NCBI RefSeq assembly: GCF_032191835.1 | Contig: NC_083224.1 | Span: 17,918,001 to 17,982,000, forward strand | Length of the DNA stretch: 64,000 nt | Direction of reading: 5' to 3' | Source: Heteronotia binoei | Lineage: Eukaryota | In this document: positions 10,690-64,000 of the stretch, in pieces | How positions within the stretch are numbered: position 1 is the stretch's first letter | How the letters are laid out: each line of letters opens with the position of its first letter | Program-made: the position numbers and the translations under genes | Notes under the pieces: generated by a model | Databases searched by the model: none | What the model saw: only the letters and a program-made list of their open reading frames with translations | What the model was told of the DNA's origin: nothing

Positions 10690-10766
10690 GCTATGAAGTT
10701 ACATTGTTTTTCCTTGTGTGGGTACTTAGATGTTGCTGAAGATAACTACACTTACTTAATCTCATT

Positions 10767-13249: not shown

Positions 13250-13667
13250 CTGGAATAAAGAGAGAGATCTCCTGTTGGAATCCACACAAGGAGGTCTGAT
13301 ATGCTCCTAAATTTAAGTACATTAAGCATCAGAGACACTTGGTTGGGGCTCTTACCATTTTTATGGCTCCCCACCTGTGTGACTTCTTTTATGTGAAATA
13401 AGGGCTGTTTTATGATTGAAGCTGTTTTTGTAGTCTAAGCAATTATACAATTGGTCTTCTAAGGGCATTAGCATCTGCAAGATGACATTCATTCTCTGCA
13501 GAAAGTCTTTGCAAATGCCATACATTCATTTCCCTTTTCCCTGTGGTGGTTTCTCTGGTTCACACAGAGGTCTCTGTTCCTTCTTCTGTTTACTGACCTT
13601 CCTTCATAGACTGGGGTTTCAGGGAGGACCCCTCATTCGGAAGGAGTGGGCTTATCCCTCCTCTTAC

Positions 13668-16828: not shown

Positions 16829-17045
16829 TGGGAGGGATAATGGTTCAGTGGCAGAAGCCGTGGTAAGCAGAAGGTCGCAGGTTCAATTCCCGGCATCTCC
16901 AACTAAAAAGAGTCCAGACAAGTAGGCTTGAAAAACCTTAACTTGAGACCCCGGAGAGCCGCTGCCAGTCTGAGTAGACAATACTGATGTTGATGGACTG
17001 AGGGTCTGATTCAGTATAAGGCAGCTTCATATGTTCATATGTTCC
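16829..17045 (+). mobile_element. tRNA-derived SINE with an ...atatgttc tail (probably Squam2-type)
   Basis: Degenerate A/B boxes. Body and tail are shared with 22274, 34407, 44578 and 61497. Confidence 0.7.
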
Positions 17046-20345: not shown

Positions 20346-20439
20346 AACCTGATGGCAGTTAACATACACACAACAATAGCTGGCAGGAAGTCTTAGGATA
20401 AGGTCACTGGCTTGAGCGGAGCGACTGAAAGCCCCTCAC

Positions 20440-20862
20440 CTGCTGTGCCTGCCTCTTCTCCTCTTCCTGACTCAGGAGGAAACCTTCGGCCAGGGCCACT
20501 GCCTGGGAACTGCTCTCTGGCCCGCATCCTCTCACCCAGCCCTGCACTTCCTGCGGCAGGATGGCCAGGAAGTGCTCCAAGATCACCAGATCCACCATCT
20601 CCTTCTTGGTGCACCTCTCTGGCTCCAGCCAGTCCTTACAAAGTCCGTGGAGCTGGCTGCAAACCTCTCGGGGCCCATCAGTCACCTGGTAACAGAACTG
20701 CTGGAAGCATCGGCTGCTTCCATCTGGGGTCACAGGGTTCTGAACCAATATCTCTGGCATAGCTCTTTCCCAGAATTCAGCACCACTCCCTACTTGGAGG
20801 GGATGGGGACATTCCTTTGATATCTTGCCAATTCCAGGGCCTTCGGGGTCCTTCTCTTCCAT
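20440..20862 (-). CDS. Gene 1 first coding exon: SCAN domain (141 codons)
   Basis: ATG at 20862. [30 protein letters not shown]...[35 protein letters not shown]. Donor cag|gtgagg. Confidence 0.95.
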
Positions 20863-21544
20863 CTCCTTCCCTTTTTCTCTTGGGCTGCTGCCTCTGACTC
20901 TGGAAAGATACTTTTATTCCCCTGGGTGTGAAAAGGGAGAGGACAGCAATAAAAAACACAGGAAGAAAAGAAATGGGTTCCACCACTGACCCTGGTAAAG
21001 AATCACCTAAGAATTACCTCAGTGGATCAGAAGGAACATCCCCGTCGTTTCCTGTTGAAGAGGAATGTCACTGTGGTACTTTACATATCAAGCTTTTAAA
21101 AATATGCCTGTTTGGTCTTTCAGGCAACAAAAATACCAGTACTTTTTTAAAAATCTGTTGCGGCCATTGTGAGATTGGTTTCTGATTTCTGAGGATCAGT
21201 CTGTCTAGTGGATACATCTCCAGTTAAACTGGAGCCTTGGACAAAGAGGTTGTCAAGGTCTTAACTATTAAGAGTCCACCACCCCTTAACTACTAGATCA
21301 AGCTGGAGTCCCTGAGGTCAGGAAGGCACCCACCCACATGCTTTCCCCCAAACTAAGAAAAAATTATTCAAGAGGGCTTCTCTACCCAAGCAACAGGGTA
21401 GCATTGTACAAAAGGCTTCACAAAGTTACTTGGATGAATTACTGGGGACTGGAAACTATATCCCTGCGTATAGTTTGCTATAATTTGTATCTTGCTATGT
21501 AATTTTGCATTATTTATTGGGTCATGTTAACAGTTATGTATTTA

Positions 21545-22625
21545 TTTTATTTAACATCCTGCCCCCCCACCCCCCACCGAAGGCAGGCTCAGGACGGCTC
21601 ACAGATTAAGGGTCAGGCAATCAGATTAGTGTGACCAAACAAGATAAAAACAACAGTAGGAACATAAAAACATAAGAACGGTTATTAAAAAATCAGCAAG
21701 CGCTAGTACAGTAGTTTCAGACAACAATTAAAATTCTAATGGTGGTAAATAGCTAGATGGTCGATGTTAGATGTTTGAAGAGGTCCCAGGATCGCCATAG
21801 CATGATGAGACAGATCTGTTGGTCGTATTTATGGGCCTGTCCCGTTGCTGCAGGTGTTACCGTTATGAAAATGCATGGCGGAAGAGTGCCGTTTCGCAGG
21901 CCCTGCGGGACTGTGAGAGAAGAAGAAGATATTGGATTTATATCCCGCCCTCCACTCCGAAGAGTCTCAGAGCGGCTCACAATCTCCTTTACCTTCCTCC
22001 CCCACAACAGACACCCTGTGAGGTGGGTGGGGCTGAGAGGGCTCTCACAGCAGCTGCCCTTTCAAGGACAACCTCTGCCAGAGCTATGGCTGACCCAAGG
22101 CCGTGCCAGCAGGTGCAAGTGGAGGAGTGGGGAATCAAACCCGGTTCTCCCAGATAAGAGTCTGCACACTTAACCACTACACCAAACTGGCTCTCACAGG
22201 GCCCTGTCCTCCTCCGGCAACTCATTCCACCAGCTAGGGGCAGCAACGGAAAAAGCCCTGGTTCTATTTGATTTGAACATATGAACATATGAAGCTGCCT
22301 TATACTGAATCAGACCCTCGGTCCATCAAAGTCAGTATTGTCTTCTCAGACTGGCAGCGGCTCTCTAGCGTCTCAAGCGGAGGTTTTTCACACCTATTTG
22401 CCTGGACCCTTTTTTGGAGATGCCAGGGATTGAACCTGGGACCTTCTGCTTCCCAAGCAGATGCTCTACCACTGAGCCACCGTCCCTTCCCTAAGCCTAA
22501 CTTCTCTGATGCTGGGAACTGTCAACAGGTTTTGAGATCTGGACCAAAGTGCTCACTGGGGCATAGGAATGGAAAGGCGGTTCCTAAGGTATGCAGGACC
22601 CTGGACGTATAGGGCTTTAAAGGTT
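21545..22625 (-). mobile_element. L2 3' fragment with a nested Squam3-type SINE (21915-22195) and a Squam2-type SINE (22274-22491)
   Basis: L2 ORF2 C-terminal sequence, similar to 1085-1330, resumes on both sides of each SINE. Confidence 0.75.
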
Positions 22626-23765: not shown

Positions 23766-24219
23766 CTGCTCTGGGATACTATGGTGGCTCTTTATTCCAC
23801 CAAATGTACATCCTGCTCCCTCTCCTCGCAAGGGCACTCGAGGTGACTTCCACAGCTCAGTGCACCTGATAAAACAGTGCAAAAGATACAAGAAACTTTT
23901 AAAAATAGGGAACTATTAAGCCATCTATCTCGGATAAACCCCACCCACCCTCCTGCAGGGCAGGCCTGGGGGCACCCCCCATCCTTCCCCTTCCCCCGTT
24001 GCCTGGCGGATCCCAATCCCCCAGAGGCCACCCGAGGAAGAGCCTCCTTGCAAGCCCTGCAAACCACCACCCCCTTCCCAAGGCAGCCCCCGGGGCTGAC
24101 AAAGGGACCCCCCCGACAGAGCAGAATATCCAGTCTGCAAAGGATCTAAACGACCCCCCCCCTCCCCCCAAGACGTGGCAAGATTCGAATTTGTGTCTTT
24201 GGAGACCGAAACGACTCAC

Positions 24220-24343
24220 TGGGGAGGGAATCTTCCTGGCCTTTTGCAATTCTGAAGCCTCCCTCCCTCCTCTTTCTCCTTCTGTCCCCTCCCTTTGTCT
24301 GCCTCTCTAGCCGACGGCTCGGCTCTTTTAACCCTTTCACGGT
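24220..24343 (-). promoter_or_regulatory. Gene 1 putative non-coding first exon / promoter arm
   Basis: Donor ccca|GTGAGT (intron starts 24219). It is homologous to 43262-43385, 60925-61075 and, inverted, 61235-61404. The TSS cannot be determined. Confidence 0.6.
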
Positions 24344-25115
24344 TTGTTGTTCAGTCGCACAGTCGAGTCCAACTCTTGGAGACCCCATGGACCAAGTCAC
24401 GCCAGGCCCTCCTGTCTTCCACCATCTTCCGAAGTCTCACCATCCTCAAATTCGTGTCTGTTACATCAGTAACACTGTCCAGCCATCTCATCTTTCGCCG
24501 TCCCCTTCTTCTTTTGTTGCCTTCTGTCTTCCCCAGCATCAGGGTCTTCCCCGGTGAGTGCTCCCTTCTCATTTGGTGGCCAAAGGATTTGAGCTTCAGC
24601 TTCAGCATCTGACCTTCCGGGGAACAGTCTGGGTAGATTTCCCTTAGGACTGACTGATTTGATCTTCTTGCAGTCCAAGGGACTCTCAAGAGTCTTCTCC
24701 AGCAACACAGCTCGAAAGCATCTATTCTTCTGCGCTCAGCCTTCCTTATGGTCCAGCTCTCACAACCATGCATTACTACTGGGAATACCATTGCCTTGAC
24801 TATACTTACTTTCGTTGGCAGGGTGATGTCTTTACTTTTTATTATACTGCCCAGGTTCGCCGTAGCGGTCCTCCCAAGGAGCAAACATCTTTTGATTTCA
24901 TGGCTACAGTCACCATCTGCAGTGATCTTGGATCCCAGAAATATGAAATCTGTCACTACTTCCATGTCTTCCCCTTCTATTTGCCAAGGTGTGATGGGGC
25001 CGGATGCCATAATCTTATTTTTTTTTGATGTTGAGTTTCAAGCCTACTTTTGTGCTCTCCTCTTTCACCCTCAACAAGAGGTTCTTTAGGTCCTCATTTT
25101 CTGCCATTCAAGGTT
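24344..25115 (-). mobile_element. Bov-B (RTE) LINE, 5'-truncated
   Basis: MASGPITPWQIEGEDMEVVTDFIFLGSKITADGDCSHEIKR...VHGVSKSWTRLCD, with a (caa) tail at 24344. Confidence 0.95.
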
Positions 25116-28100
25116 GCAGACCACCAAAAAAAGCTCCCTGCCCTCCCGGTAAAGCCCCCCCCCCCAGACTGGGCTTCAGCCGGGCTACGGTCAGTGCTGC
25201 CCTCTAATGCAGCTCAATGGGGCTGCTCGAGAGTCACTCCCCTGCACAGGGCTGTGCTTGGGGTGGACCCCAGGCTACAAGAGCACCATTAGCTTGTAAC
25301 TAACACAAGCACCTTCGCAGGCAGCTAACCCACTGGAGCTTGAGGTCTCCAGTGTATTTGTTAAGCTCCTGCGTATTTGTGCTTGTAGGTTACAATGGTT
25401 GAGTGTGTAAGAAGCTACAGGGCTAAATAGGGTTGCCAATCCCCAGGTGGGCTTATACAAAAAACCGCAAATAACTGTGGGAAATAACGAATAAGTCCTG
25501 AAAATTACTTCAAAAATATAAATGATTATTCTGCAAACACTTCGAAAATACATATCATTCCATATTATCAATAATTCATAAATACAAGGTACAACATGCA
25601 AGAAATAAAGTTCCAAAACTACTTTAGTTCATTGGGTCAATTTCTGGCTTAAAGCGCTTTGGAGACCATTCACGGGAAGAATAAAGTGCAGTGCCGACCA
25701 TATTTTGAATGCAGACGATTTTGATTTTCCAAGAATATTTCTTCTGTTTCCAAGGTGTTATCTTAAAACTTTCATCTTTTATAGAAGCTTTATATGCAGT
25801 GGGTCACCATCAGCCTCTGACAGTACTGCCTGTAGTACTGTTTCAAATTCCTTTGTCTAAGAGACATACCCCACTTATCAGCACACAACAAAACACGTTC
25901 ATGTAGCACTAGCTCTGGAGACTGGCTCATGAGAACATGAATAAAGGGGGAGGCAAACTCAGTTGCATCCATAACAAGCCCAACAAAACACACACACTCT
26001 TTCCGTAGCAAGGCAAAAAACTCATACCTTGACTAAAACGTTGCTGGCCTTACAGATGCTTTCTTTGTATCTCTCCAGTGGGATCAAGGGAACTGGGCAA
26101 AGGAAGCTCGCTCTCTTTCCCTCCTTCCCCAGAAGATGAGGAGGGGGAGGAGCCTCAGTCACTAGCAGGAAGACAGGCTTGGCTCAGAAGCTCTGCAGTG
26201 TGATTGAGCCTGGCAAACTTAATCACACAGCAGAGCTACAGAGCTAAGGTCCTCCACTGGCTGAGGCTCCTCCTCCCTTTGGGAGGGGGAGGAAGGAAAG
26301 AGCGAGGAGAGGCTGCTTTGCTTGGTTTCCTCAATAGGAAAGCATGCAAACTGTTGAGAAGAGGAATATCAAGCCAGCATTAGAGTGTGTGTCCAGACCA
26401 AGTTTACCCAGCACATTTCCTTTGATTGATTGGGGATTTTGAACTTAAGACTTCCCAGATAGTAGGCTGGTACTGATCACTATACATGGCTGTCACTCTG
26501 TTCCTGATTGCTTCATAAGAGATGCAGTTATTTTTCTAGGGAAGACTACAGTTTTGTAAATAAACACATAGCCCTCAGTCTGTGCCATGTTGCCTTCACA
26601 TGTTTTTGACCAGCACATGAATCAGCTTATGTACAAAAGTTCGCAATACCCAGCCATTTCATGTTTTCCTCTGGGTCATAGGATCAAAGCATTGACCATG
26701 AGATTTCTGTAATGAATGTCAATAAATCAAAAGTAGGTTTGCAACTTACAGATATCACAGAAAGACCATAGTACCATAGAATTTTTTTTTAATTCCTAGA
26801 GTTTCCTGCAAATTCCTAGAGTGCCCCTGCATGACATGCCACTTCAGGGTGTGAAAAAAAGTTCCCCGCCAGCAACCGGGGGGGGGGGGAGGGGAGACTT
26901 GGCAACCCTATCGCAAAGGAGGAAAGCTCAGCCAATGAAGGCCAGGGACGCTTGGCTTTATTCTCTCCCACACAAAGCAGGAACAAGGAAGAGGGAGCTG
27001 GGCAAAACGGAGTTGTGATGCAGTGGCAGCAGCAGCCCCAGAAAAGGAAGCAAGAGAACCAGCTGCTTGCGAGGATCTGAGACCTGCAGGGGCTGGGTTA
27101 ATATAGGGTACAGATAATCATTATACTCATCATTTTTAAAGGACATCTTATGTTTCTACTTAAAACAGCTGTCCCATGGAACAAAGTTTTTGACATGTTA
27201 TGATGATTTCACCCAACCTCAGGATTTCATCTTCTTTGCTGAGCAGCCCCCTTTCTTTCTTCTTTTTCTGTCTGAACCATGCAGCTGTGAGTTTGATAAC
27301 GCAGGAGGAAGATGATAAAAACATAACCTGTTTTATTTCACTTTTAAGGGCACTGGTCAGGTAGGATTCAGGTTTAGGACTTATCAGGTGAACAGGAATG
27401 GGGTAACCTTATAGAAATATAAACACCAGACAGTTTGTCACAAATAAGTAACCGTTCCTGCTATTCAAACAAGTCTTTACAAGCTGAGATTTCTTGGCAC
27501 TCTCTGCTTACATAAACAAGCACAAGCTTCTTGGTCTCAAAGACACTTGTTGGTGAAGGAAGGAACATTCCCACAAGTTCCAGTGTCCTTTCTTATTCAC
27601 TTGAGTACTGTGTGTTGAGTACTGTCATGTCGCTTCTGATTTATAGCGACTCTCTGAAATGACATTCTCCAAAACATCCTATATTTAGCTACCTCTCTGA
27701 ATATTCTGCATGCCGCCAGTAGGGACAGTCATCTGAGGTCGGCATGACTTTCAGATGCATACACAGACTCACATGCACACACATAAAAATACAATACCGC
27801 CACCCCCAATAAAATTGTTAATCCTCTACCAATTTTTACTCCACCATCTGAAACTGATCCAGATATCCTTACAATACATTCTGCATACAGATTGAAGAGA
27901 TAGGGAGATAAAATGCATTGGTGACACCTTTGCCAGTTGGAAACCATTCTGCTGGAAATCCATGGGCTGGGATGAGAAATATACCGGTTAGGGTGAGGGA
28001 AGGTGTTGTTCTTATTTTCAAGGTATCTCTTCCTTGCTTTTCGTCAGGTATCGTTTAACTCATCTATGTTTTTGTCCTCAGAACAACTATGTTAGGCTGA

Positions 28101-30028: not shown

Positions 30029-30907
<879 letters not shown>

Positions 30908-33127
30908 TGACTGAATCTCTTCCCACACTCTGAGCATTCAAAAGGCTTCTCTCCTGTGTGGGTTTTTTGATGCTGTTGAAGATAACCACTGCAGCTGAAT
31001 CTCTTCCCACATTCTGAGCATTCATAAGGCTTCTCCCCTGTGTGGGTTCTTAGATGGTTTTGAAGAGTGTTACTGTGACTGAATCTGTTTCCACAGTCTG
31101 AGCATTCAAAAGGCTTCTCCCCTGTGTGGGTTCTTAGATGTCTTTGAAGATTGCTACTGTGACTGAATCTGTTTCCACACTCTGAGCATTCAAAAGGCTT
31201 CTCCCCTGTGTGGGTTTTTTGATGCTGTTGAAGATCCCTACTCTGACTGAATCTCTTCCCACACTGTGAGCATTCAAAAGGTTTTTCCCCTGTGTGGGTT
31301 CTTAGATGACTTTGAAGATGGCAATTGTAGCTGAATCTCTTCCCACACTCTGGGCATTCAAAAGGCTTCTCCCCTTTGTGTGTTCTCTGATGCTGTTGAA
31401 GATTGCCACTGTGACTGAATCTCTTCCCACACTCTGAGCATTCAAAAGGCTTCTCCCCTGTGTGGGTTCTTACATGTTTTTCAAGACTGCTACTGTAACT
31501 GAATCCCTTTCCACACTCTGAGCATTCAAAAGGTTTCCGTACTGTGTGGGTTCTTAGATGTTTTATAAGACTGCTACTATCACTGAAACTCTTCCCACAC
31601 TCTGAGCATTCAAAAGGCTTCTCCCCTGTGTGGGTTCCTAAATGAGTTTGAAGATCATCAGTCCGACTGAATCTCTTCCCACATTCAGCACATTCAAAAG
31701 GCTTCTCCCTTGTGTGGGTTCTTTGATGCTGCTGAAGATAGCCACTGTAGCTGAATCTCTTCCCACACTCTGAGCATTCATAAGGCTTCTCCTCTTTGTG
31801 GGTCCTTAGATGTTTTAGAAGGGTGCTACTGTGGCAGAATCTCTTCCCACACTCTGAGCATTCAAAAGGCTTCTCCCCTGCGTGGATTCTTAGATGACTT
31901 TGTAGACTGCTACTGTGAGTGAATCTATTTCCACACTCGGAGCATGTAAAAGGTTTCTCACCTTTGTGGGTTCTTAGATGTTTTTGAAGGGCGCCACTGT
32001 GACTGAATCTCTTCCCACACTCTGAGCATTCAAAAGGCTTCTCTCCTGTGTGGGTTCTTCGATGCTGTTGAAGAGAACCATTTTGACTGAATCTCTTTCC
32101 ACACTCTGAGCATTCAAAGGGCTTCTCCCCTGTGTGGGTTCTTAGATGTTTTTGAAGACTACTACTTTCACTGAATCTCTTCCCACACTCTGAGCATTCA
32201 AAAGGCTTCTTCCCTTTGTGGGTTCGTAGACAACTTTGAAGATTGCTACTGTGACTGAATCTCTTCCCACACTCTGAGCATTCAGAAGGCTTCTCTCCAG
32301 TGTGGATTCTTCCATGCTGTTGAAGACTGCTAGTGTGACTGAATCTCCTTCCACACTGTGAGCAGTGAAAAGACTTCACCCCTGCGAGGGTTCGTAGATG
32401 ACTTTGAAGTTCGCCACTCCAACTGAATCTCTTTCCACACTCTGAGCACTCAAAAGGCTTCTCCCCTGTGTGGATGGTTTTATGCTGTTGAAGAGTGCTA
32501 CTGTGACAGAATTCCTTCCAAGACTCTGAGCGTTCAAAAGGCTTCTCCCCTGTGTGGGTTCTTTGATGCTGTTTAAGAAGGAAACAATGGGTGAATTTCT
32601 TTCCACACTCTGAACACTCAAAAGGTTTCTCTGCTGTGTGGATCCTTTGGTGCACAAGGAGTTGTGATTTGTATCTGAAATACTTTCCACACTGAAAACG
32701 TTTACATGCTTTCATTGTACTGTAATTTGAAAAATGTATACTATATTTGGTTTCATCTGAGAAGTTCATTCCACACTCCAAGCGCTTGTATGTTTCTTCC
32801 AGCAAGTGAATTGCTTCTTGGCGATAACCCTCTTGGCAAGGAATGGATTTATCCCTCTTCTGCACCATGCGCCTGACTTTCTGCCTCTGAGGCCTACTTG
32901 GAATCCTGATGTTTCTTCTCACATCTTCATTTTTTACTTCGTCTGGTGGTAAATGATGTAGTTCCTCATCCTCCTCATTCCTCTGATCATCTCCTGTTGG
33001 AATAAGAGAGATATCTTCTGTTAGAATCCACACAAGGAGGTCTGCTATGCTCCTAAATTTAAGTGCAGTAAGCTTCCTGCATCAGAGCCTCTTGATTGGG
33101 GCTCTTACAATTTTTATGGCTTCCTAT

Positions 33128-33741: not shown

Positions 33742-34406
33742 CTGCCAAAATTAAGAGATTTTCAATCAACACCCATGCAAGAAGCCAAGCCACCAGTCAG
33801 GCACTCCTCTCTCTTGGGTCTGTATTTCTTTTATAAGAACTTCTTTCCTACCAAACTGAGCTGCTGGCCGCACCTTATCCCTGCCTGGACTTCCCACAGA
33901 GCTGTTTTGATAGTCTGCCCTTCCTTCCTCTCCCTAAACTTATTTTAAGGCAGAAGGTGGCAAAGAATGATTCCAGTGTGCTCCCATTTGACTTCCCATG
34001 CAGCTCTTTTGATTCTCTGCTCTTGACAATTAAATACAAGAAATTATCATGACATCCAGTCCTGCAACTGCACTGAGAGGTTCCTTCCAGTTATGAAGAG
34101 AGCCAGGAGGAGCTGGTTTCCAGCCTCCCCCAAATATACCTTTTCTGTGGATCTACCCAGGATCTAACCACGTGAACCCCATAGTACAGAGGGAGACCCC
34201 TATGCTTTTTGGAAGAGGTGCCATTGTTTAGGGGGGGCGGGTAACGGCCGATGAGAAAACCAGCCACCTTTCTCAAGCTCAGAAGCATTTTCTTGATATT
34301 TCTGAGCCATTATTTACATCTTAGATGGGCCAATTGTCTAATGTGCAGCAATTTCTTCATCATCCAGGGATATCTGCCTTTCCAACAAGCACCAAGTCAG
34401 CCTCTC

Positions 34407-34613
34407 ATATGAACATATGAAGCTGCCTTTTACTGAATCAGACCCTTGGTCCATCAAAGTCAGTATTGTCTTCTCAGACTGGCAGCGGTTCTCCAGGGTC
34501 TCATGCTGAGGTTTTTCACACCTATTTGCCTGGACCCTTTTTTGGAGATGCCAGGGATTGAACCTGGGACCTTCTGCTTACCAAGCAGATGCTCTACCAC
34601 TGAGCCACCATCT
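34407..34613 (-). mobile_element. Squam2-type SINE, specific to unit 2
   Basis: Full head and tail. The empty site is at about 16310. Confidence 0.75.
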
Positions 34614-36325
34614 CTCTCTGGAAGGGAGTGTATCTTATTGTCATGAAGAGATAGCCAGAAGACTGGCTTAGGAGGCCTCAAGGTCATTAATTTGTTGCAG
34701 TAGAGTAAGAGCCTCTGGAAGCCCATCCCAGAGGAACACACAGTGCCAAAAAGTCCTGATAAGGCCTCAGAATAGTCTGTCTTGTTCCACCTTCCTGTAA
34801 CACAGAGGGAACACGCACTGGACATACAGATATGCAATACGCTGGCTTTGAAGAAACCTGAGGATTGGGGAGAGCTGAGTGGACAGGTATACCTGGCTTT
34901 TCTGTGGCAGACACTTCCCTGCCTCACTTCTTTGTGAAGGAGTTGGTGAAGGAGGATCCCTGCATAATTAATGAATACCCCTATAATAATGAATGAAAGC
35001 ATGTTTTTGCCTTTAAAAAGAGGGTGTTGGATACAATGTTTGTTTGAAGCAACTATCCGAGGTCAGATTGTCTCAGTGGGTGCAAATTCAAGGTTGTAAA
35101 TTAGATTAGAGACAGTGACCTCATAGAGGCCTCTGGATGTGTATTAGATAACAAAAGGGCCTCTGCCTCTTTGAGAAGCTTCTTGCAAGAGCTGATAACG
35201 CATGGAGACAGAAGGTAGAAGGAGAGCAAGGGGGGTGGGGGATGTTGAGTTAGATAAGCTTGGGGGCCTGCCTGCTTGTTTTGGGTGTGAATAAAATGGG
35301 CTGGATGTAAAATGATCTTAACTATGTCATTTTAGAGGCTTATGGCTGGCTACTTGATATCAAAGTAAATTCGGTTTCATACCAGCAATTTGTGCGGACC
35401 TCGTTATTTCTCTGCTTCATTGGTCACTTGCCTCTTGGGGATACCGGAGCTCACTGCAGTACTTTCTCTATCCTGTTGTGGGGCTCAACCAACTGTGCTT
35501 CAACTGAGAACTTGTCTCTCTTTTATTGGGCTATGGAAACTCTTCAAAAGAACACGATTCCACCCTCTTGGGATGAGGACTGATCCACCTCATGATAACA
35601 GAGGTTGTTGTATGGTTCAGCTTAAGCCACTTTCGCTTGGGTTGCAGTGTTAATTGGTGGGTCTACTTGCTGCAGAACACCCTTGCAAGGTACAACAGCT
35701 CCTAGGAAGCACTCAGAGCCATCTCCAACTATAGGGAGGCCTGAATTCACCCATGTGAAGACTCTAGGAAAGGGCTGATGGGCCTTTGGCCTCATCTAGC
35801 AGGGCTGGTCTTATCTAACCCCCTCTTCCCTGGAATATCCAGTATTTAAGGCTAGTGTGGCCACTCAACAGCCACAAGTGAGCTCAGCCCCAGAAGGAGC
35901 TTCTGAGCCTCCAGATTCCAGGCCCCCAAAGGCCCCTCCTCTCCCCTCACTCAGCAGGCTTGGGAATTCTACCAAAACAAGCGCTGCTTAGAAGTGAAGA
36001 GGAAAGGTTCCAAGGATATTCCCTTGACATAATTGTGAAGGATACCCACTTGCTGCCAGTTCATTTGGGAAGGATACCCCAAAATCCCATCTGGGGAAGG
36101 GGATGCTGTAATGGCTGACGATTGAGAAATCAGGATCTGGCTCCTTCCAGAATCTTTCTGAAGGCCTCTCAGCCCCTTTTCGCCTCGGGCCACGACACTC
36201 TTTCTGGCTTGGGTGATGGCCACAACACTGGCCTCAGCTGCCCTGGATCTGTGGGGTGTCATGGTGAACATCACTTTCATGGCCACCCCAACTTCACACC
36301 TTCAGCACATATGAAAGATCCTTAC

Positions 36326-49909: not shown

Positions 49910-52389
49910 CTATTCGGAATTTTTCTGACCTTTGTGTATTCCTTGATGCTCCAGAAGATGGCCACTCTGACTGAATCTGTTCCCTCTTTCCGAGCATTCA
50001 TAACACTTCTCCCCTGTGTGGGTTTTTAGATGTTTCTGAAGACCACCACTCCGACTGAATCTCTTCTGACACTCTGGGCATTCAAAAGGCTTCTCCCCTG
50101 TGTGGGTTCTTTGATGCTGTTGAAGATGGCTACTCTGACTGAATCTCTTCCCACACTGTGAGCATTCAAAAGGCTTCTCCCCTGTGTGGGTTCTTAGATG
50201 ACTTTGAAGATTGCCACTGTGACTGAATCTCTTCCCACACTGTGAGCATTCAAAAGGCTTCTCCCCTGTGTGGGTTCTTACATGTTTTTCAAGACTGCTA
50301 CTGTAACTGAATCTCTTCCCACACTCTGAGCATTCAAAAGGCTTCTCCCCTGTGTGGGTTCTTAGATGTTTTATAAGACTGCTACTATCACTGAAACTCT
50401 TCCCACACTCTGAGCATTCAAAAGGCTTCTCCTCTATGTGGGTCCCTAGATGACTTTGAAGATGGCCACTGCGACTGAATTGCTTCCCACACTTTGAGCA
50501 TTCAAAAGGCTTCTCCCCTGTGTGGGTTTTTTGATGCTGTTGAAGATGGCTACTCTGACTGAATCTCTTCCCACACTGTGAGCATTCAAAAGGCTTCTCC
50601 CCTGTGTGGGTTCGTAGATGACTCTGAAGATTGCCACTACGACTGTATCTCTTCCCACATGAGCATTCAAAAGGCTTGTCCCCTGTGTGGGTTTTTAGAT
50701 GACTTTGAAGATCGCTACTACGACTGAAACTTTTCCCACACTCTGAGCATTCAAAAGGCTTCTCCCCTGTGTGGGTTCTTTGATGCTGTTGGAGATGGCC
50801 ACTGCGGCTGAACCTCTTCCCACACCCTGAGCATTCAAAAGGTTTCCACCCTGTGTGGGTTCTTTGATGCTGTTGAAGAGTGCTATTGTGACTGAATTTC
50901 CTCCCACACTCTGAGCATTTGAAAGGCTTCTCCCCTGTGTGGGTTCTTTGATGCAGTTGAAGACTGCCACTCCGACTGAATCTCTTCCCACACTCTGGAC
51001 ATTCAAAAGGCTTCTCCCCTGTGTGGGTTATTTGATGCTGCTGAAGATGGCCACTCCGACTGAATCTCTTCCCACATTCTGAACATTCAAAAGGCTTCTC
51101 CCCTGTGTGGGTCCTTAGATGACTTTGAAGATTGCCACTTTGGCTGAATCTCTTCCCACACCGTGAGCATTCAAAAGGCTTCCACCCTGTGTGGGTTCTT
51201 TGATGCTCTTGAAGAGTGCTATTGTGACCAAATTTCCTCCCACACTCTGAGCATTTGAAACGCTTCTCCCCTGTGTGGGTTCTTTGATGCAGTTGAAGAC
51301 GGCCACTCCGACTGAATCTCTTCCCACACTCTGGGCATTCAAAAAGCTTCTCCCCTGTGTGGGTTCTTTGATGCAGTTGAAGACTGCCACTCCAACTGAA
51401 TCTCTTCCCACACTCTGGGCATTCAAAAGGCTTCTCCCCTGTGTGGGTTCTTTGATGCTGTTCAAGATGGCCACTCCAACTGAATCTCTTCCCACATTCT
51501 GAGCATTCAAAAGGCTTCTCCCCCGTGTGGGTTCGTAGATGACTTTGAAGAGCATGATTTTGGCTGAATCTCTTCCTACACTCTGAGCATTCAAAAGGCT
51601 TCTCTCCTGTGTGGCTTCTTAGATGACTTTGAAGATTGCCACTGTGACTGAACCTCTTCCCACACTCTGAGCATTCAAAAGGCTTCTCTGCTGTGTGGTT
51701 TCTTTGATGCTGTTTAAGAAGGAAACTCTGACTGAATCTCTTCACATTCTCCGAGCCTTCAAAAGGTTTCTCTCCTGTGTGGATCCTTTGGTGTACAAAG
51801 AGCTGTGATTTATATCTGAAGTATTTTCCACACCGATAGCATTTACATGCCTTCGTTATACTATGTTTTGAAAAATTTATATTACCTTTTTTGCTATTCA
51901 AGAAAATCATTCCTTGCTCTGAACAGATAAAGGGTTTCTCTCCTGAATGAACTCTTCGGTGTTGAATAAAGTCTGATTTCTTTGAGAAGCTCTTGCCACC
52001 GTCTGAGCAGCTATGAGTTTTCTTTCCTCTATGTGTTCTGAGTTGTCTAAGGAACTCTGCTCTGGAAATCATGGCCTTTCCACGCTTCAGGCATTGATGG
52101 GTCTTTTTTCCACTGTGCATTCCGGAATGGACATTATATTGCATCTGATCTGAGAAGTTCATTCCACACTCCAAGCACTTGTATTTTCCCTCCAACATGG
52201 GAATTACTTCTTGGAAATTCCCCCTTTGGCAAGGAACAGATGTGTCCCTCTTCTTCACCCTGCGCCTGACTTTCTGCCTCTGAGGCTTGCTATGAATCCT
52301 GACATTTCTTCTCACATCTTCATTCTTGACTTTGTCTGGCGATAGATGATGCAGTTCCTCATCCTCCTCATTCCTCTGATCATCTACTG
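49910..52389 (-). CDS. Gene 3 last exon: about 27 finger units (about 22 with intact ligands)
   Basis: Open to the stop at 49910. Acceptor tttattccag|CA, phase 1. Confidence 0.95.
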
Positions 52390-52890
52390 CTGGAATAAAG
52401 AGAGAGAGAGATCTCCTGTTAGAATCCACACAAGGAGGTCTGATGCAGTCCTGAAGTTTTATCCATGCTCCAAATATTTCAGTGCTTTCCTCCTGTTTTA
52501 CAGTGAAGTTTACAATAATATGAACTTTGAAAGTACATTAAGCTTCCTGCAACAGAGGCACTTAATTGAGACTCTTATCATTTTTACGGCTCCCCACCTT
52601 TGTGACTTCTTTTATGTGAAGTAAAGGCTGTTTTATGATGGCAGCTGTTTCTGTACTGCAAGCACTTATACAATTGCTCCCCCAAGGGAATTAGCGTCTA
52701 CGAAATGACATTTATTCTCTGACTGAAGGTCTTTGCAAATGCCACACTTCTCTCCCCTTTTCTCTGCAATGGATTCTTTGGTTCACATGGAGGCCTTTGT
52801 TCTTTCTTTTGTTGTTTGACCTTCCTTCATGGACTGGGGTTTCAGGGAGGACCCCTCTTTGGCAAGGAATGGGCTTATCCCTCCTCTTAC

Positions 52891-54905: not shown

Positions 54906-56565
54906 TTCGAGAATGGTATTGCAAGCTGCAGTGACAAATAACCAGTTATGAATTTGAAAAGGTATTTTTATTTAGGAGCAGATAATGCTTAAATACTTTA
55001 AGAACAGTTCAGTGAGAGGAGAAAATAAGAAAGCTAAATATTAAGGTGCTAGCTAAAATGCTGCAAAGACAATGGTTCACAAAATACAAGATGTTACCCT
55101 TCCAGTTGCAGGGTTCAAGACAACTCATCTCCAGAGTTCAGTGAACCAGTGTTAAGTTCCCAAATAGTTGAGGTGCCTGCAGGTGGACCCATCGGTTTGT
55201 AAATTGGTTGCCTGCTACCTTGAACCCAAAGGTTACCAGCTGGGTCTGGGTTGGTGACCTTTGTGACAGAAGGAGTTGTTCACCTAACTCTTGGGGAGAT
55301 GGGAGGTTGCAGCAGCGCTTTCTCTAAACTGTGGATTAACTAATTCTGCTTCAACTGAAAACTTGTTTCTGAGTTTATTGGACTATTGAATCTCTTCAAC
55401 AGCGCACAATCCCACTTTTATGGGGTGAGGATTGATCCACCTCACAGCAGCAGAGGCTGTTGTCTGGTTTGGCTTAAACCAGTTCCCCCTGGGTTGCAGT
55501 GTTAACCGCTATTAACTGGTAGGACTACTTGCTGCAGAACACCCCTGCAAGGAAGAACAGCTCCAAAGAAAGCATTCAGACCCATCTCCAACTAATAGGA
55601 AGGCCTGAAGGCATCCATGTGAAGAATGAAGGAAAGGGGTGATGTGCCTTTGGCCTCATCTAGCAGGGCTGTTCTTAGGTAAACCCCACCTTTTCCTGGA
55701 ATATCCAGTTAAGGCTAGCGCAGCCGCTCAAGAGCTGCAAGTAAGCTAGGCTCCAAAAGGATCTTATAAGTGTTGGATTCCAGATCTGAGGCCTCTCTCT
55801 CTCTCTTCACTCAGCATACTTGGTAATTCTACCAAACCAAGTGTTGTTTAGAAGTGAAGAGGAAAGTTCCCTTGGGGATTCCTTGCCCAGTCCCTTGACA
55901 TAAGTGCAAAGGATACTCACTTGCTGCTAGTTCGTTTGGGAAGGAAACAGTCTCTTCCGATCTTCCAGAGAAACTCTGGAAGAGTAGGCCTTTGTCTATC
56001 TCCAACGGAGGATCTCTTACATTCCTGGCTGCTTTGACAGAGAGAGAGAGAGAGAAAGGGGGGTAGAGGGAGGGAGGGAGAGGGAGGAGATAGATGATTT
56101 TTATACAAGGAAGTAAAGAAATCCAAGAAAGAGGAACATTTCTTCAGGAAGGACAGAACCATGATCTAGATCAAAGCCTACACCGCCAACCACTCTTAGG
56201 AGGATGAATCTTTTCCAAATTACAGAGTGGATGGCCAAAATCCCATCTGGGGAAGGGGATGTTGTAAAGGTGAACTGAGAAATCAGGATCCAGAGTCCTT
56301 CTGAGGGCCTCTCAGCCCTGCCTTGGCCTCAGGCTAAAACATCTTCTCTAGCTTGGTGATGGCCACAACACTGGCCTCAGCTGCCCCTGGATCAGTGGGG
56401 TGGGTTGTATCACTCTACCTGGCCCTGCTGAACATCACTTTCATGACCACCTCAACTTCTCAAGGCACCCAGTGGCCGCCAATTACCTGCACTGGCCTCA
56501 CAAACATACACTGCTGTTGATCCATGCATCATCCCAATGGCAGCGATTCACACCTTTAGCACTTA

Positions 56566-56826
<261 letters not shown>

Positions 56827-56913
56827 TCAGAGCTTCTTTTCCTCAGACAGGAGCAAAAGCTTCCCTGAGAAAGAACTGAGGGCCCTGACTATCCCCCGTT
56901 TATCCCCCCCTAC

Positions 56914-56984
56914 CTGGACCAGAGGCCAAGGAGGCATTTTCTCTTTTCTGTAAAGAAAACGGCTTGATAACATCTCTTCGCTAC
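56914..56984 (-). CDS. Gene 3 71-bp exon; candidate new start ATG at 56973 (MLSSRFLYRKEKMPPWPLVQ)
   Basis: cccttgcag|/|gtaggg flanks, in frame with KRAB-A. No homologue of the upstream coding exons was found. Confidence 0.65.
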
Positions 56985-57790
56985 CTGCAAGGGAGACAAA
57001 ATGGGAAGGAAGAATTTTAGCCTGAAATTCCTATTTTGTTTGCTTGTCTCAATTTTGTTTATGCACCCCAGTTCTCAGGGTTGTGAAACCTTCTTTTCTT
57101 CACGCTCAAGAAAATTTGTAATAACTTTTAGTGAACTGTGGGAGAGGTGGAAGAGAAGCCCCTGGTACCGATGAACCTCTGGAGGTTATAAATGCTGCCA
57201 ACACATTGCAAACATCTGTGAAATTTGAAATGTGCCCTGTGAGCCCTGGAGTTCAAACGGTGTCAGTATCCCAGCTAGATCACACCAAAAGCCCAAGCAT
57301 GACATTCTCCCGCCTGCTGGGCCTTCTTACCCATCCTGGAGCCTGGACTGGCAGGAGAAAAACAGGTGACTGGAAATCATGTGACACGACACAAGGCCAT
57401 CACATCCAGTCCTAAACACAAGTGATTTTAGTATATCAGCTAAATCTTTTGGGTGGTTCCAATTTGTTTTCAGAGCATCTGCTGATACTCTGACTTCACA
57501 TCCAGGTAGTTGGCCGAGTGAGACATGAAAATGATACCATGTCCGCCCCATGCTCCACCCTCAAAAGGGGGGCAAGCAATGGCCTAGCCTCCCTAATCCA
57601 GTGTCCTCTTTCTGAGTGTTGCCCCCCAGATGCCCCAAAGTCTTTAAACTGGCACATATAGCCCAAAGCATTGTCCTCTGGCAATGGGTTTTCTGAGATT
57701 TGCTGCCCCAGAACAGTGTGTGTGTGTTTGTGTGTGTCTAAAGTGCTGTCACGTCACAGCTGACTTATGGTGACTCCAGTTCTTCAAGGC

Positions 57791-58067
57791 AAGAAGAAGT
57801 TGATATTGGATTTATATCCCGCCCTCCACGCCGAATCTCAGAGCAGCTCACAATCTCCTTTTACCTTCCTCCCCCACAACAGGCACTCTGTGAGGTGGGT
57901 GGGGCTGAGAGGACTCTCACAGCAGCTGCTCTTTCAAGGACAACCTCTGCCAGAGCTATGGCTGACCCAAGGCCATTCCAGCAGGTGCGAGTGGAGGAGT
58001 GGGGAATCAAACCCGGTTCTCCCAGATAAGAGTCCGCACACTTAACCACTACACCAAACTGGCTCTC
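57791..58067 (-). mobile_element. Squam3-type SINE
   Basis: Full-length match to the other copies. Confidence 0.85.
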
Positions 58068-58199
58068 TACATTCAGAGACATTCAGAGGCAGTAAACCTC
58101 TGCAAATAGCACACAAGAGGGGACCAGGAAAGGCCTTGTATTGGCTGCCACGACTTTGGTAAGGGTCTGTACGGCAGAGCCCTGAGCACCTACCTAACC

Positions 58200-58685
58200 C
58201 CGGTATTTATTTATTTTATTATATTTATATCCTGCCCTCCCCTATTGGGCTCAGGGCGGCTCACAACAGTTAAAATACACAATGTTAAAACAAATTACAG
58301 TAAAATCATTAAAATCCATTGTATACATACACTTGCCATTTCAGTTCTAAAATCCAAGATGGCATCAGTATTATTCATTCGTATTTGGCATACGATAGTG
58401 TTGCTCAGTGCTGTGGTATAGGGGGTCGCATTCCCTGTTAGTTGTTAAAAGCTAACAGTTCTGTTTTGCAGGCCCGGCGGAATTGTGGCAAGTCCCGCCG
58501 CAGGGACCTGATATTTTTTAGGAGAGCGTTCCAAGGGGCAGGGGCTGCTACTGAAAAAGCTCTTGTTCTGGTGGAAGCCAGCCGAGTGTCTTTTGGACCG
58601 GGGATCAGAAGAAGATTTTGGGTATTTGATCTTAGTGCTCTCTGGGGCTCATATGGAGAAAGGCGGTCCTGGAGGTATCTTCCCT
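58200..58685 (-). mobile_element. L2 3' fragment
   Basis: L2-type 3' end and degraded ORF2 C-terminus. Confidence 0.7.
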
Positions 58686-58827
58686 ACTAACAAGTACCTT
58701 TTAACTGTGACCGAAGAGACGTGAGGATCCAGGCAATTTAACAAGAAGTTTATTGTAGGTGTTCTAGAATGACAAGTGGGTAGTAAAACATTTAATGCCA
58801 CAGTGAATAAAGAGAAATAAAGTCAAA

Positions 58828-59275
58828 GCGATGGTATTCCCAGTGGTGATGTATGGCTGTGAGAGCTGGGCCGTAAGGAAGGCCGAGTGCAGAAGAATAG
58901 ATGCTTTTGAGATGTGGTGCTGGAGAAGACTCTTGAGAGTCCCTTGGACTGCAAGAAGATTCAATCAGTCAGTCCTAAGGGAAATCAACCCAGACTGTTC
59001 CCTGAAAGGTCAGATGCTGAAGCTGAAGTTCAAATACTTTGGCCACCAAATGAGAAGGGAGCACTCCCTGGGGAAGACCCTGATGCTGGGAAAGACAGAA
59101 GGCAAAAGAAGAAGGGGACGGCAAAAGAGGAGACGGCTGGACAGTGTGACTGATGTAACAAACACGAATTTGAGCAGACTTCGGAGGATGGTGGAAGACA
59201 GGAGGGCCTGGCGTGACTTGGTCCACGGGGTCGCAAAGAGTCGGACTCGACTGTGCGACTGAACAACAACGACGA
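58828..59275 (+). mobile_element. Bov-B 3' fragment
   Basis: MVFPVVMYGCESWAVRKAECRRIDAFEMWCWRRLLRVPW...TRLCD plus a (caa) tail. Confidence 0.95.
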
Positions 59276-60109
59276 ATAAAGAAACAGTAAAGGTTGGTGT
59301 AAATAAATAAAAGCCCTGATGCCTCTGACTAGACGGTCTCTTCTTTAAAGTCAAACCAATTCACTCACCCTCCCTGGATGAGGGATCTCTCTACTTCTGC
59401 AACCTCCATCTCCACCTGCCCAGCCTCAGCAGAAAGAACAAACTTCCCTGTCCAGTGGGTCTATTTATGCTTTCCTCCCAGGTACCACCCCGTCTGGGCT
59501 AGTTTTCCCTGTTACCCAATCAAGAGGGACAGAAGCAAGCCTGGGAAGTGTAAGCCCCTGTATTTACTCCTAGGCAGGCTTCTCCCTGCCCTGTGGGCCG
59601 CATCAGATGATGACATCCAGTGCCGGAGCCCCAGGCAAGGCGCCGCTGTTCCCCTTGATGCCAGCACTGCTGAGGGCAAACACAGCAATAGCAAGGCTCC
59701 CGGTCTCAGCTGCCCCAGTCCACTGTTGCTATGCCTCTTATGTCAGTAATGCGAGAGGCAGAGTGACAGCGGGCAGGGGCGGCGCACATGGCGAGACTGG
59801 GAGCGTTGTTGCCACTTCCAAGCAGACTATTTCCATCCGCTTAGCAGCAAGGGAGTGTGGGAGGGCCCAAACCGGCGCCCTCTCCCCAGCTTGGCGCTCC
59901 AGGCAGCTGCCTACGGCTGCCCAATGGACGTACCGAGCCTGATGACACCCCCCTCCCACAAGACTGTGCATCTTTCCCCTGTCCTTTCCCTGGTGACAGT
60001 GTGACTGGTGCTTGCATCAGGAACTGCAGTATTTACATTTAAAAAAAAAAAATCTGTTGGGGATGTTATGAGCTTGGCTTCCGATTTCTGGGGATCAGTC
60101 TGTCTAGTG

Positions 60110-60399
60110 CAGAGGTGTTGAACTCATTTGTCATGAGGGCCGGATGTGACGTAAATGAGACTTTGTTGGGCTCAGCCATGTTGGGCTGGGCCATGTGTGT
60201 ACCTATTTAAGGTTAGATAGCAGAGGTATACATAACAGAAAGAAAGCAAACAGAAGGGGGAGTGAGAGGTGGAAAGAAAGCGACTTTAAATGCGTTCTCC
60301 AAGCTCCAGTGGAGGGGGCGTGGAATGGGGTTTCAAGAGTCACACAATTTGTGTGAAAGAGCCACATGTGGCTCCCCAGCCACAGTTTGGCCACCCCTG
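60110..60399. mobile_element. hAT MITE or chimera of two MITE halves
   Basis: cagaggtgttgaactcatttg ... ggccacccctg. The flanks share only a central ctag. Confidence 0.6.
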
Positions 60400-60849
60400 C
60401 CCTAGACTCCGGAGGTTGAAGTTGAGGTTGTCTTACATCTTCCTTTCAAAGAAATATGATATGCCAGACAGCTGATAAAGTGGATTTTCGTTCTTCCAAT
60501 ATTATGTCATAGTAATTCTATTAAAAAAGATATTTTGAGCAGCGCTATACCGCCCCCCCCCCCCCCCATGTCCACTGAAGTCAGTCAGCTTAGAAGGGTG
60601 CAACTCTGTTTAGGATTGCGCTGTTTATCTTCTAGTTTTCATCAGGGACACTGCAATATTTTGCTATTTTGCTAACTGCTGGTGCTCATCCACGCCCTCC
60701 CCACAGGTAACCTCACCGAGTCACAGGTGGCTCACAATCGGACGCCCCCCAGAGGGCCGGCCCCTAGGCAATCACCTAGTTTGCCTATTGGCAGAGGCAG
60801 CCCTGCTCCCCCTGACAAAGGGAAACTCCGACGTAGAAGAGCTGCACGT

Positions 60850-61475
60850 TTAAAAAGGTCTTAAACGTCCTCCCAACACTTAGCAAGAGCACGTTTTGTA
60901 TTTTTGGAGGCTGCACGGACTTACTGGGGAAGGCACCTTTCAGGGGCTCCGGCTGCCGGGCTTTTCTGCCTTGGCTTTCGCCCCCCCCCTTCTCTCTCTC
61001 CACCCCCTCCCTTTCCTGCCCTCTCTAGCCCAGAGCTCGGCTCTTTTAACCCTTTCGCGGCTGCAGAGCTCCGGGAAAAGCTCCCTCTCCCGCTGCAGTC
61101 AGCAGACGCCCTACGATGCAGCTCAGTGGGGCTGCTCGGGAGTCACAGGGCTTCGTTCTCGGGGAACCGCTGACTGCAGCCGGGCGGAATGAAGCCCAGT
61201 CCCGCGGGGAGGCGGTGGTCTTGACGGGGAGGGCATTGCAGGGAGCTTTTCCCCGCGACTCTGCAGCCGTGAAAGGGTTAAAACAGCAGAGCTCTTGGCT
61301 AGAGAGACCGATAAAAAAGGGGGGGGGGAGAAAGAGAGCGGGGGGGAGGTTTCAGACCCTTCCAAAGCGAGAAGATCCTGGCAGCCGGGAAGGTTCCCTC
61401 TGCAGTGAGTCCAAAAATACTAATTGGGCTCTGGCCACGTGTTGGGAGGAAGGAGGTGTTTAAATGCTTTGCAGA
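60850..61475. promoter_or_regulatory. CpG-rich palindromic bidirectional promoter with two divergent non-coding first exons (genes 3 and 4)
   Basis: Inverted arms about 60850-61103 and 61169-61475. Donors are ccca|GTAAGT on minus (intron starts 60924) and tgca|GTGAGT on plus (intron starts 61405). Confidence 0.75.
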
Positions 61476-62441
61476 CAGGGATGATCCTTCTGTGTGGGGG
61501 TTCCCCTTCTACAAGATCCCTGGCATCTCCAAAAAAGGGTCCAGGCAAATAGGTGTGAAAAACCTCAGCTTGAGACCCTGGAGAGCCACTGCCAGTCTGA
61601 GAAGACAATACTGACTTTGATGGACCAAAGGTCTGATTCAGTATAAGGCAGCTTCATATGTTCAAGCTCCGGAGGTGGGGTCAGGAGCAAGGCTGCCTCT
61701 AAGCTGCAGAGTCTTGTGAGCAACATTTTTACTTTGTGAGCCGCTGGCATGAAAGTTGGGAGCTGTTGCATACATCATAGAATCATAGAGCGGGAAGGGA
61801 CCTCCAGGGTCATCTAGTCCAATCCCCTGCCCAATGCAGGAAACTCACAAACACCTCCTCCTAAATTCACAGGCTCTTCATTGCCTCCGATTGTCCTCTG
61901 GGGCTATCCTTCCCGAGCTAAGGCAAAAATGTGTGAGCTGGAGGCTAAAAATCTGTGAGCTAGCTCAGGCGAACTCAACTTAGAGGGAACACTGGTTAGG
62001 AGCTGCCTGTCGTGTGTGTGTGTGTGTGTGTTTGTGGTCAGGAGGACTGGAGCAATGTTCCCTCTAAGCTGCAGAGTCTTGTGAGCAAAAATTCTACTTT
62101 GTGAGCTGCTGGCTTTTAAGTTGTGAGCGGTGTTCCCTCTCAGCTGAGTTAGCGTGAGCTCGCTCACAGATTTTTAGCCTCCAGCTCACACATTTTTGTC
62201 TTAGCTCAAGAAGAATGACCCCAGAGCACAATAATTTATGCAGTAGCTCACAATTTTAATGCCAGTAGCTCATTTGTGAAATAGGATAAACCTTAGGTGT
62301 CTCTTCCCCAGGGTCAGTGATGTAACTCCATTTTCTTTTCTTTCTGCCTTTCGGATATCTTTCCCTCTGCCTTTCGCAGCCAAGTGAATGAGTGTGTCTT
62401 TCCAGAGTGAGAGGCAGCAACCCAAGAGAAAAGGGAAGGAG

Positions 62442-62864
62442 ATGGAAGAGAAGAAGCCTGAAGGCCCTGGAACTGGCAAGACATCCAGGAAACGTCCCCA
62501 TCCCCTCCAAGCAGGGAGTGGTGCTGAATTCTGGGAAAGAGCCATGCCAGAGAACTTGGTTCAAGACCCTGTGACCGCAGATGTACGCAGCCGACGCTTC
62601 CGGCAGTTCTGTTACCAGGAGGCTGATGGGCCCCGAGAGGTTTGCAGCCGGCTCCATGGACTTTGTAAGGACTGGCTGGAGCCAGAGAGGCGCACCAAGA
62701 AGGAGATGGTGGACCTGGTGATCCTGGAGCAGTTCCTGGCCATCCTGCCGCAGGAAGTGCAGGGCTGGGTGAGAGGATGCGGGCCAGAGAGCAGTTCCCA
62801 GGCAGTGGCCCTGGCCGAAGGTTTCCTCCTGAGTCAGGCAGAGGAGAAGAGGCAGGCACAGCAG
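62442..62864 (+). CDS. Gene 4 SCAN exon (141 codons; an in-frame upstream ATG is at 62388); the rest of the gene lies beyond the window
   Basis: Acceptor cgcag| at 62379/62380. [30 protein letters not shown]...QAVALAEG. Donor cag|gtgagg. Confidence 0.95.
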
Positions 62865-63371
62865 GTGAGGGGCTTTCAGTCACTCCACTCAAGCAATGAG
62901 CTTCTCCTAAGGCTTCCTGCCAGCTATTTCTGTGGGCGTGTTAACTGCCAGGAAGCGCTTCTGACTTATGGAAGTCCTAAGAACATCCTCTCATTAACAG
63001 CTCTGAACAGCACTGCCTTTACACATACTGAGCTCTGCTTCGTGCACCGTCACAAAATTCGGTCTGAGGGCTGTGGCTTTCTTGGCTGAGTCAATCCATC
63101 ACGTGTTTGCTGTTCCTCTTTTTCCTGCTGCCTTCTACTTTTCTTAGCATTACTGTCTTTCCCAGTAACTCTGTCTTCTCATAATGTCACCAGAATATGA
63201 TATGCTCAGTGGAGTTATTTCAGCTTCCAGGGAGAGTTGAGGCTTGATTTGATCTAAAAGCCACTTATTTGTCTTTTTGGTGGCCCATGATATCTCCGCC
63301 AACACCACCAAGAATCAACTTTCTTCCTTTTCCAACTTTCACATTTACACATAGTAATAGGCAATAAAGTA

Positions 63372-63660: not shown

Positions 63661-64000
63661 GTTCCTCTTAATAGGCAATACTAAAGCACAAATTACATAA
63701 CTTGACCTTGGTCACCATTGACACATCCTTCCCAGGGCTTTTTCTGAGCAGGAATGCACAGGAACGCAGTTCAAGCTGGCTTGGTGTCAGGGGGTGTGGC
63801 CTAATATGCAAATGAGCCCCTGCTGTGCTTTCGCTACCAGAAAAGCCCTAATCCTTATACTGAAGAATTTTTTCTAGCTCCTTCATGGCTGCCTTTCCTG
63901 GTCTCAGTCTCCTGGTTTCTTCTTTGCAGTCTCCCTTTTGGTTGATGAAGGATCCAAGGAACAGACAAGCTTGAAGAATTTCAATTTTTTTCATAATCAA

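Follow-up and report, generated by a model that had tools for sequence, protein, structure and literature searches.

The question raised by this locus is how two zinc-finger genes came to start back to back from the arms of one quasi-palindrome, and whether that structure works as a single bidirectional promoter. The window, by which we mean the whole stretch of 64,000 nucleotides that was analysed, is a cluster of SCAN/KRAB C2H2 zinc-finger genes with the strand pattern + - - - + (G0, G1, G2, G3, and G4). G1 to G3 are three tandem units of ~19-20 kb each on the minus strand. Their finger exons lie at 10767-13322, 30628-33033, and 49910-52429, and the SCAN exons of G1 and G2 were located with Pfam at 20404-20862 and 39612-40250, all on the minus strand. 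The finger exon of G0 (1-823) is on the plus strand, and so is G4, which begins at about 61300. The SCAN-domain exon of G4 falls in an open reading frame at 62388-63089 (Pfam SCAN, E 1e-35; also recovered by tblastn with the RefSeq model P0023), with the SCAN-coding part starting near 62550 by homology to the H. binoei model. Homology to P0023 and Pfam place the exons of G3 on the minus strand and those of G4 on the plus strand, in a head-to-head layout. At the other end of the cluster, G0 and G1 are tail-to-tail inverted paralogues (1-1786 against 10319-11435); their homology ends at 1786 and 10319, and the ~8.5 kb between them is rich in transposons and contains an assembly gap (3865-4044).

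The two halves of the region between G3 and G4 are reverse complements of each other, as the initial annotation had claimed. When the region was compared with the window by blastn, 60868-61086 matched the reverse complement of 61240-61450 with 70.4% identity over 230 columns (E 5e-26), and the same nested inverted blocks (I1, I2, I4, I5, and I15) were returned by a repeat search. The inner 341 nt (60990-61330) folded as a single long imperfect DNA hairpin of -117 kcal/mol versus -66 +/- 4.7 kcal/mol for 100 shuffles (z = -10.8). All of the landmarks named in that annotation were located. The arms share the outer pairs gtatttttgga / tccaaaaatac and ccggctgcc / ggcagccgg, and the donor pair consists of ggacttactg at 60917-60926 (reverse complement CA|GTAAGT) and cagtgagtcc at 61403-61412. 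Further inward, repeat search and alignment identified a perfect 12-bp inverted repeat in the upstream part common to both gene copies; its left copy, gctgcagtcagc (61092-61103), and its right copy, gctgactgcagc (61169-61180), neither assigned to a strand, enclose a 65-bp spacer (61104-61168). The distance from donor to donor is 481 bp, and the conserved blocks described below are ~230 bp apart. In four-way alignments the homology of the arms extended beyond the limits first drawn, into intron 1 on both sides, to ~60790 and ~61510. Because the arms are only ~72% identical, a fold-back artefact of the assembly is excluded. Gene conversion from arm to arm was also looked for, and nothing was found: the longest perfect runs, of 14 and 12 nt, are by our own estimate about what chance gives at 72% identity.

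What the arms contain became clear from the alignment of the corresponding regions of G1 to G4 in gene orientation. The order was the same in all four copies: a conserved block, ~105 nt of G-rich sequence, a splice donor (CA|GTGAGT or CA|GTAAGT), and ~110 nt of intron. The block spans ~70 nt, has the consensus parts TCTGCAGC..GAAAGGGTTAAAAG..GAGCT..GCTAGAGAG, and includes a TTAAAA(G/C) box. A 26-nt pattern taken from its best-conserved part matched exactly four times in the 64 kb, once for each of G1 to G4 and always in the orientation of the gene, with 0 matches expected by chance. Invariant columns across the four copies made up 37 of 47 in the block versus 93 of 179 elsewhere (Fisher p = 0.0009). 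In the left arm, read on the minus strand, the block of G3 lies at 61003-61073 (nhmmer E 8e-16; one mismatch to the 26-nt pattern) and is followed by a predicted first exon, a 5' UTR placed at 60925-61030 by homology to H. binoei exon 1 of P0023. This exon would end at 60925, and the intron would begin at 60924 with the donor CA|GTAAGT; no ATG was seen in the exon by eye. The start of G3 intron 1, which forms the outer left arm (60790-60924), is homologous to the intron 1 starts of G4, G1, and G2 in the four-way alignments. In the right arm, on the plus strand, the block of G4 lies at 61254-61324 (nhmmer E 1e-18; two mismatches), its predicted first exon, again a 5' UTR placed by alignment and by homology to H. 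binoei exon 1, at 61297-61404, and the donor CA|GTGAGT at 61405, where the intron begins. The outer right arm (61405-61510), which is the first part of G4 intron 1, is cut off by a 5'-truncated tRNA-derived SINE (61516-61664), a type of element also found at 16886-17037, 22278-22494, 34406-34619, and 44573-44788. Both arms therefore have the conserved block, the first exon, the donor, and the orientation of a SCAN-KRAB-ZNF gene. As far as sequence homology can tell, the arms are two copies of a module, promoter plus first exon, that belongs to the SCAN-KRAB zinc-finger family, and the proposal that each holds a promoter and a first exon with an intact GT donor toward its own gene was borne out by the alignment and by the homology to the H. 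binoei exon.

The module was then followed in seven H. binoei loci (L001-L007), of which L005-L007 were left out when the block profile was built. In L001, the upstream core (see below) and the block stand directly ahead of an annotated gene. Residues 1-37 of P0023 are the exact translation of L001:10001-10112, and this segment ends at AAA|GTAAGA, a donor homologous to those in the window. Therefore, the first exon and donor of the module are used in an H. binoei gene model. The profile matched upstream of every SCAN-KRAB-ZNF gene in these loci, L005-L007 included, and always in the orientation of the gene; L004 was the sole locus without the block, and the gene model there has KRAB and no SCAN. 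L001 (1-29400) is also spanned by a minus-strand gene model of 2785 residues that overlaps the plus-strand ZNF gene and probably results from several cluster members having been fused in annotation. At the protein level, a word search with the finger exon of G3 gave gecko SCAN-KRAB-ZNFs (Heteronotia binoei, Sphaerodactylus, and Euleptes) as the closest proteins, at 60-74% identity, and found no near-identical protein. The SCAN-less P0031, the match of best identity, was considered as the orthologue of G3 and rejected because its locus, L004, does not have the promoter module.

Inverted copies of the block were present in the H. binoei loci only as convergent, partial ones, in L002. There, a partial inverted copy lies ~350 bp downstream of a complete module, within intron 1 (5748-5816 on the plus strand with 6214-6143 on the minus strand, and 21653-21724 with 22126-22056 likewise), and the arrangement was copied by a ~16-kb tandem duplication. 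Inverted promoter copies thus recur, but in another geometry than that of the window. No second divergent pair of modules was found among ~10 related H. binoei promoters, so the suggestion that such a palindrome is a general way for clusters to spawn divergent pairs does not seem to hold.

The homology between the two sides is not confined to the promoters. G4 62292-63215 and G1 20140-21011, the latter in reverse complement, share 82% identity, and inverted collinear segments follow one another at 61267-61508, 62292-63215, 63293-63328, 63670-63721, and 63860-63950, up to the end of the window at 64000. Since the collinearity of the two genes takes in the SCAN exon and lasts to the window end, the palindrome is the inner tip of a gene-scale inverted duplication. 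Inverted duplication, as originally proposed, does account for the mirror symmetry; the duplicated unit, judging by this collinearity of G4 and G1, was a whole gene and not a promoter module. The copies run collinearly outward, as in a fold-back, on the G3 side save for a lost SCAN segment. In G3 the next recognisable exon after exon 1 is the KRAB-A exon (56572-56715, minus strand); the SCAN exon and the exon that follows it are lost, and 56500-60925 has no counterpart of G1 21149-18405, the segment that holds both. In keeping with the description of the pair as one SCAN-less and one SCAN-bearing paralogue, G3 has no SCAN exon and G4 has a SCAN domain in Pfam. The finger exon of G3 is an intact open reading frame of 839 codons with 21 fingers. 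With its lost exons and no ATG seen in its first exon, G3 may be a decaying gene.

The centre of the structure, in contrast to its arms, is asymmetric. On one side, 61094-61158 matches G2 44103-44166 (83%) in plus orientation and 61108-61146 matches G1 25199-25237 (87%); on the other, 61162-61235 matches G2 44119-44051 in minus orientation. Consequently, a stretch at ~61113-61160 is present only once and is homologous to G2 44120-44166 in G3 orientation only, a single-copy spacer of the kind expected from a fold-back. This part of the spacer, read on the minus strand, is distal upstream sequence of the G3 copy, and the junction falls at ~61156-61161. Within it lies a conserved upstream core (61117-61140, minus strand), given in reverse complement as CCCGAGCAGCCCCACTGAGCTGCA. 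The core is 95% identical over 22 nt to H. binoei L001 9775-9796, and no other upstream element of the family is as well conserved; in those modules that were measured, it precedes the TTAAA box by ~90-150 nt. Beyond the junction, 61162-61253 on the plus strand is the G4 copy of the proximal upstream region (75% identical to G1 and 72% to G2), and ~55 nt beside the arm that are kept in G4, G1, and G2 have been lost in G3. When the upstream regions were aligned without the insertions of G1 and G2, the G3 copy reached ~61155 and the G4 copy started at ~61162, a reach ~50 nt shorter. It had been noted that a single core stands between the arms in left-arm orientation, and the alignment agrees; the orientation is that of the left arm because the spacer is the further-upstream part of the G3 copy. 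An inversion of the spacer by recombination between the arms, which had been offered to explain it, is unnecessary, as the upstream copy of G3 is simply ~50 nt longer than that of G4. As for other identities of the spacer core, a degenerate tRNA or SINE head was rejected, the alignment scores to the local SINE heads and to tRNA-Val lying within those of shuffles, and ARAGORN found no tRNA and Rfam no match in it. A ZNF143 site was likewise set aside, a comparison by eye being unconvincing.

G1 and G2 had been described as carrying one arm plus the core. Both elements are present in each gene (arms at ~24057-24344 in G1 and ~43100-43388 in G2, cores at 25199-25237 and 44103-44166), but insertions of ~790 bp and 657 bp, respectively, split the arm from the core. 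These two insertions (24345-25132 and 43389-44045) are unrelated, and their positions, 10-20 nt upstream of the block, nearly coincide. An A-run closes the insert of G1, that of G2 opens with a (CAA)n tail, and ~15-20 nt of ancestral sequence are absent in both genes. Farther upstream, G2 differs from G1 by an inserted tRNA-Val(AAC) gene (44280-44353) and a tRNA-derived SINE (44573-44788), and the homology of G1 25355-25451 resumes at G2 44786-44882. An intron of G1 also contains the reverse-transcriptase reading frame of a LINE (14150-15535; Pfam RVT_1, E 3e-35).

Over 226 ungapped columns, the identity of the modules was 90.7% for G1-G2, 72.6% for G2-G4, 72.1% for G3-G4, 71.2% for both G1-G3 and G1-G4, and 70.4% for G2-G3. 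G1 and G2 are therefore equidistant from the two arms (71.2% each for G1, 70.4% vs 72.6% for G2), and not closer to the right arm, as had been thought. In a tree with the H. binoei modules, the four copies of the window formed one clade (support 100/99), inside which G3, G4, and (G1,G2) made a trichotomy. The arms have diverged by ~0.35-0.5 changes per site, with ~0.25-0.29 changes per site on each arm. Judged from this tree, the duplication is old and lineage-specific, because the window copies are one clade and each arm carries that many changes.

Based on these results, two other origins of the structure can be weighed against the duplication of a gene. Judged by shape and nothing else, a ~600-bp imperfect palindrome among so many transposons could be a dispersed DNA transposon or MITE with the arms as its terminal inverted repeats, or some other repeat unrelated to the genes. 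We consider this extremely improbable. The arms are not scattered independently of genes: each of the four copies in the 64 kb belongs to a different gene, shares its orientation, and keeps a constant position with respect to the SCAN exon, and the related copies in the seven H. binoei loci are all upstream of genes. Moreover, the homology runs past the arms into intron and coding exon, the RefSeq model P0023 includes the homologous exon 1 as a spliced exon, there is no Rfam match, and the core resembles neither the local SINE heads nor tRNA-Val to a significant degree. An unrelated dispersed repeat, which the initial annotation had named as one finding that would overturn its reading, was thus not what we found. 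The other origin is an inversion of a block of genes. An array co-oriented in tandem, G0-G3-G2-G1-G4, whose three middle genes were inverted, would place G0 and G1 tail to tail and G3 and G4 head to head, and the arms would then be older tandem paralogues brought together. The orientation + - - - + suits such an event, as does the 3' flank of G0, which is inverted in relation to G1 (1503-1786 vs 10591-10319). The trichotomy of G3, G4, and G1/G2 means that G3 and G4 need not be sisters, and the insertions of G1 and G2 10-20 nt upstream of the block hint at an easily broken spot. Nevertheless, such an inversion requires its two breaks to hit equivalent sites of two 20-kb units to within ~50 nt, a coincidence that is built into a fold-back. 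The distal upstream sequence that an inversion should have left over (25238-25451, 44786-44882) was not found in 1-10400, a test weakened by the gap at 3865-4044 and by transposon turnover. On balance, we hold the block inversion to be decidedly unlikely.

Whether the promoters still work is a separate matter. RNA from two raw runs (X16 and X17, ~6% of each sampled) and two contig sets (X1 and X2) was aligned to 56541-62540, a stretch that ends just short of the SCAN-coding part of G4. In these samples, depth was 0-0.9 across 60741-61340, no joints left the donors at 60924 or 61405, and the part of the G4 reading frame at 62388-62540 was also near zero. Dispersed repeats, among them the SINE at 61516-61664, accounted for all of the coverage in 56541-62540. 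Reads on this SINE belong to other copies at 95-99% identity, and the consensus of their loose ends at 61516 runs into a SINE head; because they derive from other copies, the pile-up is no evidence that the G4 intron is expressed. In base composition, 61000-61330 (331 bp) had a GC content of 0.63 and a CpG observed/expected ratio of 0.64, compared with 0.46 and 0.28 for the window. The ranges obtained were 0.57-0.64 for CpG and 0.59-0.63 for GC; at 0.64, the segment passes the usual CpG cut-off of 0.6 only marginally and is a weak island. The rise in CpG and GC suggests a promoter unmethylated in the germline. If the predicted first exons are used, the transcription start sites would be less than 481 bp apart, because the donors are 481 bp apart.

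These data bear on the idea that the inverted duplication is real and one or both of its promoters are dead, G3 being in decay, so that no bidirectional promoter is at work. The RNA depth of about zero over both predicted first exons and 62388-62540, the loss of the SCAN exon and the next exon from G3, and the ~55 nt of upstream sequence missing there all fit it. However, the conserved block has been kept in both arms with one and two mismatches in 26, both arms retain consensus donors, CpG observed/expected is about twice the window background, and the finger exon of G3 is intact, with its 839 codons and 21 fingers. Zinc-finger genes are also lowly expressed, and the reads covered only ~6% of two RNA runs. 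We therefore see such a relic as possible, though not as the favoured state of the locus. It is rather unlikely, in our estimation, that the core at 61117-61140 is itself bidirectional and so makes of a one-way promoter a shared unit that co-expresses G3 and G4, long kept by selection without homogenisation between the arms.

The reading that we prefer, and regard as highly probable, is that an entire SCAN-KRAB zinc-finger gene was long ago duplicated in inverted orientation and that the quasi-palindrome marks the junction. The two gene copies would have been joined ~160 bp (G3) and ~115 bp (G4) upstream of their conserved blocks. A stretch of ~50 nt of upstream sequence would thereby have been kept once, between the copies, and it happens to hold the conserved upstream element of the family. 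The product would be two complete and divergent core promoters. The event was presumably an inverted duplication of the fold-back or template-switch type; we infer the fold-back type because its signature is a short single-copy spacer flanked by inverted copies that are collinear (PMC3907307). Both promoters may still be active, with the single upstream element serving both. The feature is an ordinary outcome of the growth of a zinc-finger cluster and calls for no new mechanism; what chiefly sets it apart is the small distance between junction and promoters.

Paralogues arranged head to head are known elsewhere, and pairs of the COL4A1/COL4A2 type are a further example. Across animals, head-to-head pairs account for 10-21% of linked duplicate events, and most of them arose in a single step (PMC3194840). 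G3 and G4 are like these pairs in having opposite strands, abutting 5' ends, a promoter of their own each, and a one-step formation; unlike them, they have a junction unusually near the promoters (115 and 160 bp), and the intergenic region is a compact quasi-palindrome that measures ~480 bp between the donors. In fold-back inverted duplications, a spacer present in single copy is left between the inverted copies, and human spacers measure 766-70,466 bp (PMC3907307). The short stretch present once between inverted copies and the homology that is collinear outward are common to both, whereas the G3/G4 spacer is only ~50 bp, the event is an ancient one that has become fixed, a terminal deletion is absent, and microhomology is no longer legible at this divergence. 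In vertebrates, bidirectional promoters in CpG islands have transcription start sites less than 1 kb apart (PMC2688522; PMC2423431), and G3 and G4 resemble them in their head-to-head order, an expected start-site spacing below 480 bp, and raised GC and CpG. Classical promoters of this class, however, serve unrelated genes from one shared, non-palindromic island, whereas G3 and G4 are predicted to have two duplicated TATA-like core promoters.

The cluster as a whole resembles known lineage-expanded tandem arrays of SCAN-KRAB-C2H2 genes; in the tree, the modules of G1 to G4 group together to the exclusion of those of H. binoei. Neither the promoter and first-exon module shared by the family nor head-to-head junctions were described in the earlier work on such arrays. 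The module is common to the SCAN-KRAB-ZNF genes of two gecko lineages, which points to a common regulator of the family, and its ~70-nt block and 22-nt upstream core could aid the annotation of 5' ends in poorly annotated clusters. At the level of single bases, the locus illustrates cleanly how the inverted duplication of a gene sets two copies of a promoter back to back around one upstream element. By this simple route, among others, a divergent pair of paralogues can form in a fast-growing zinc-finger cluster.
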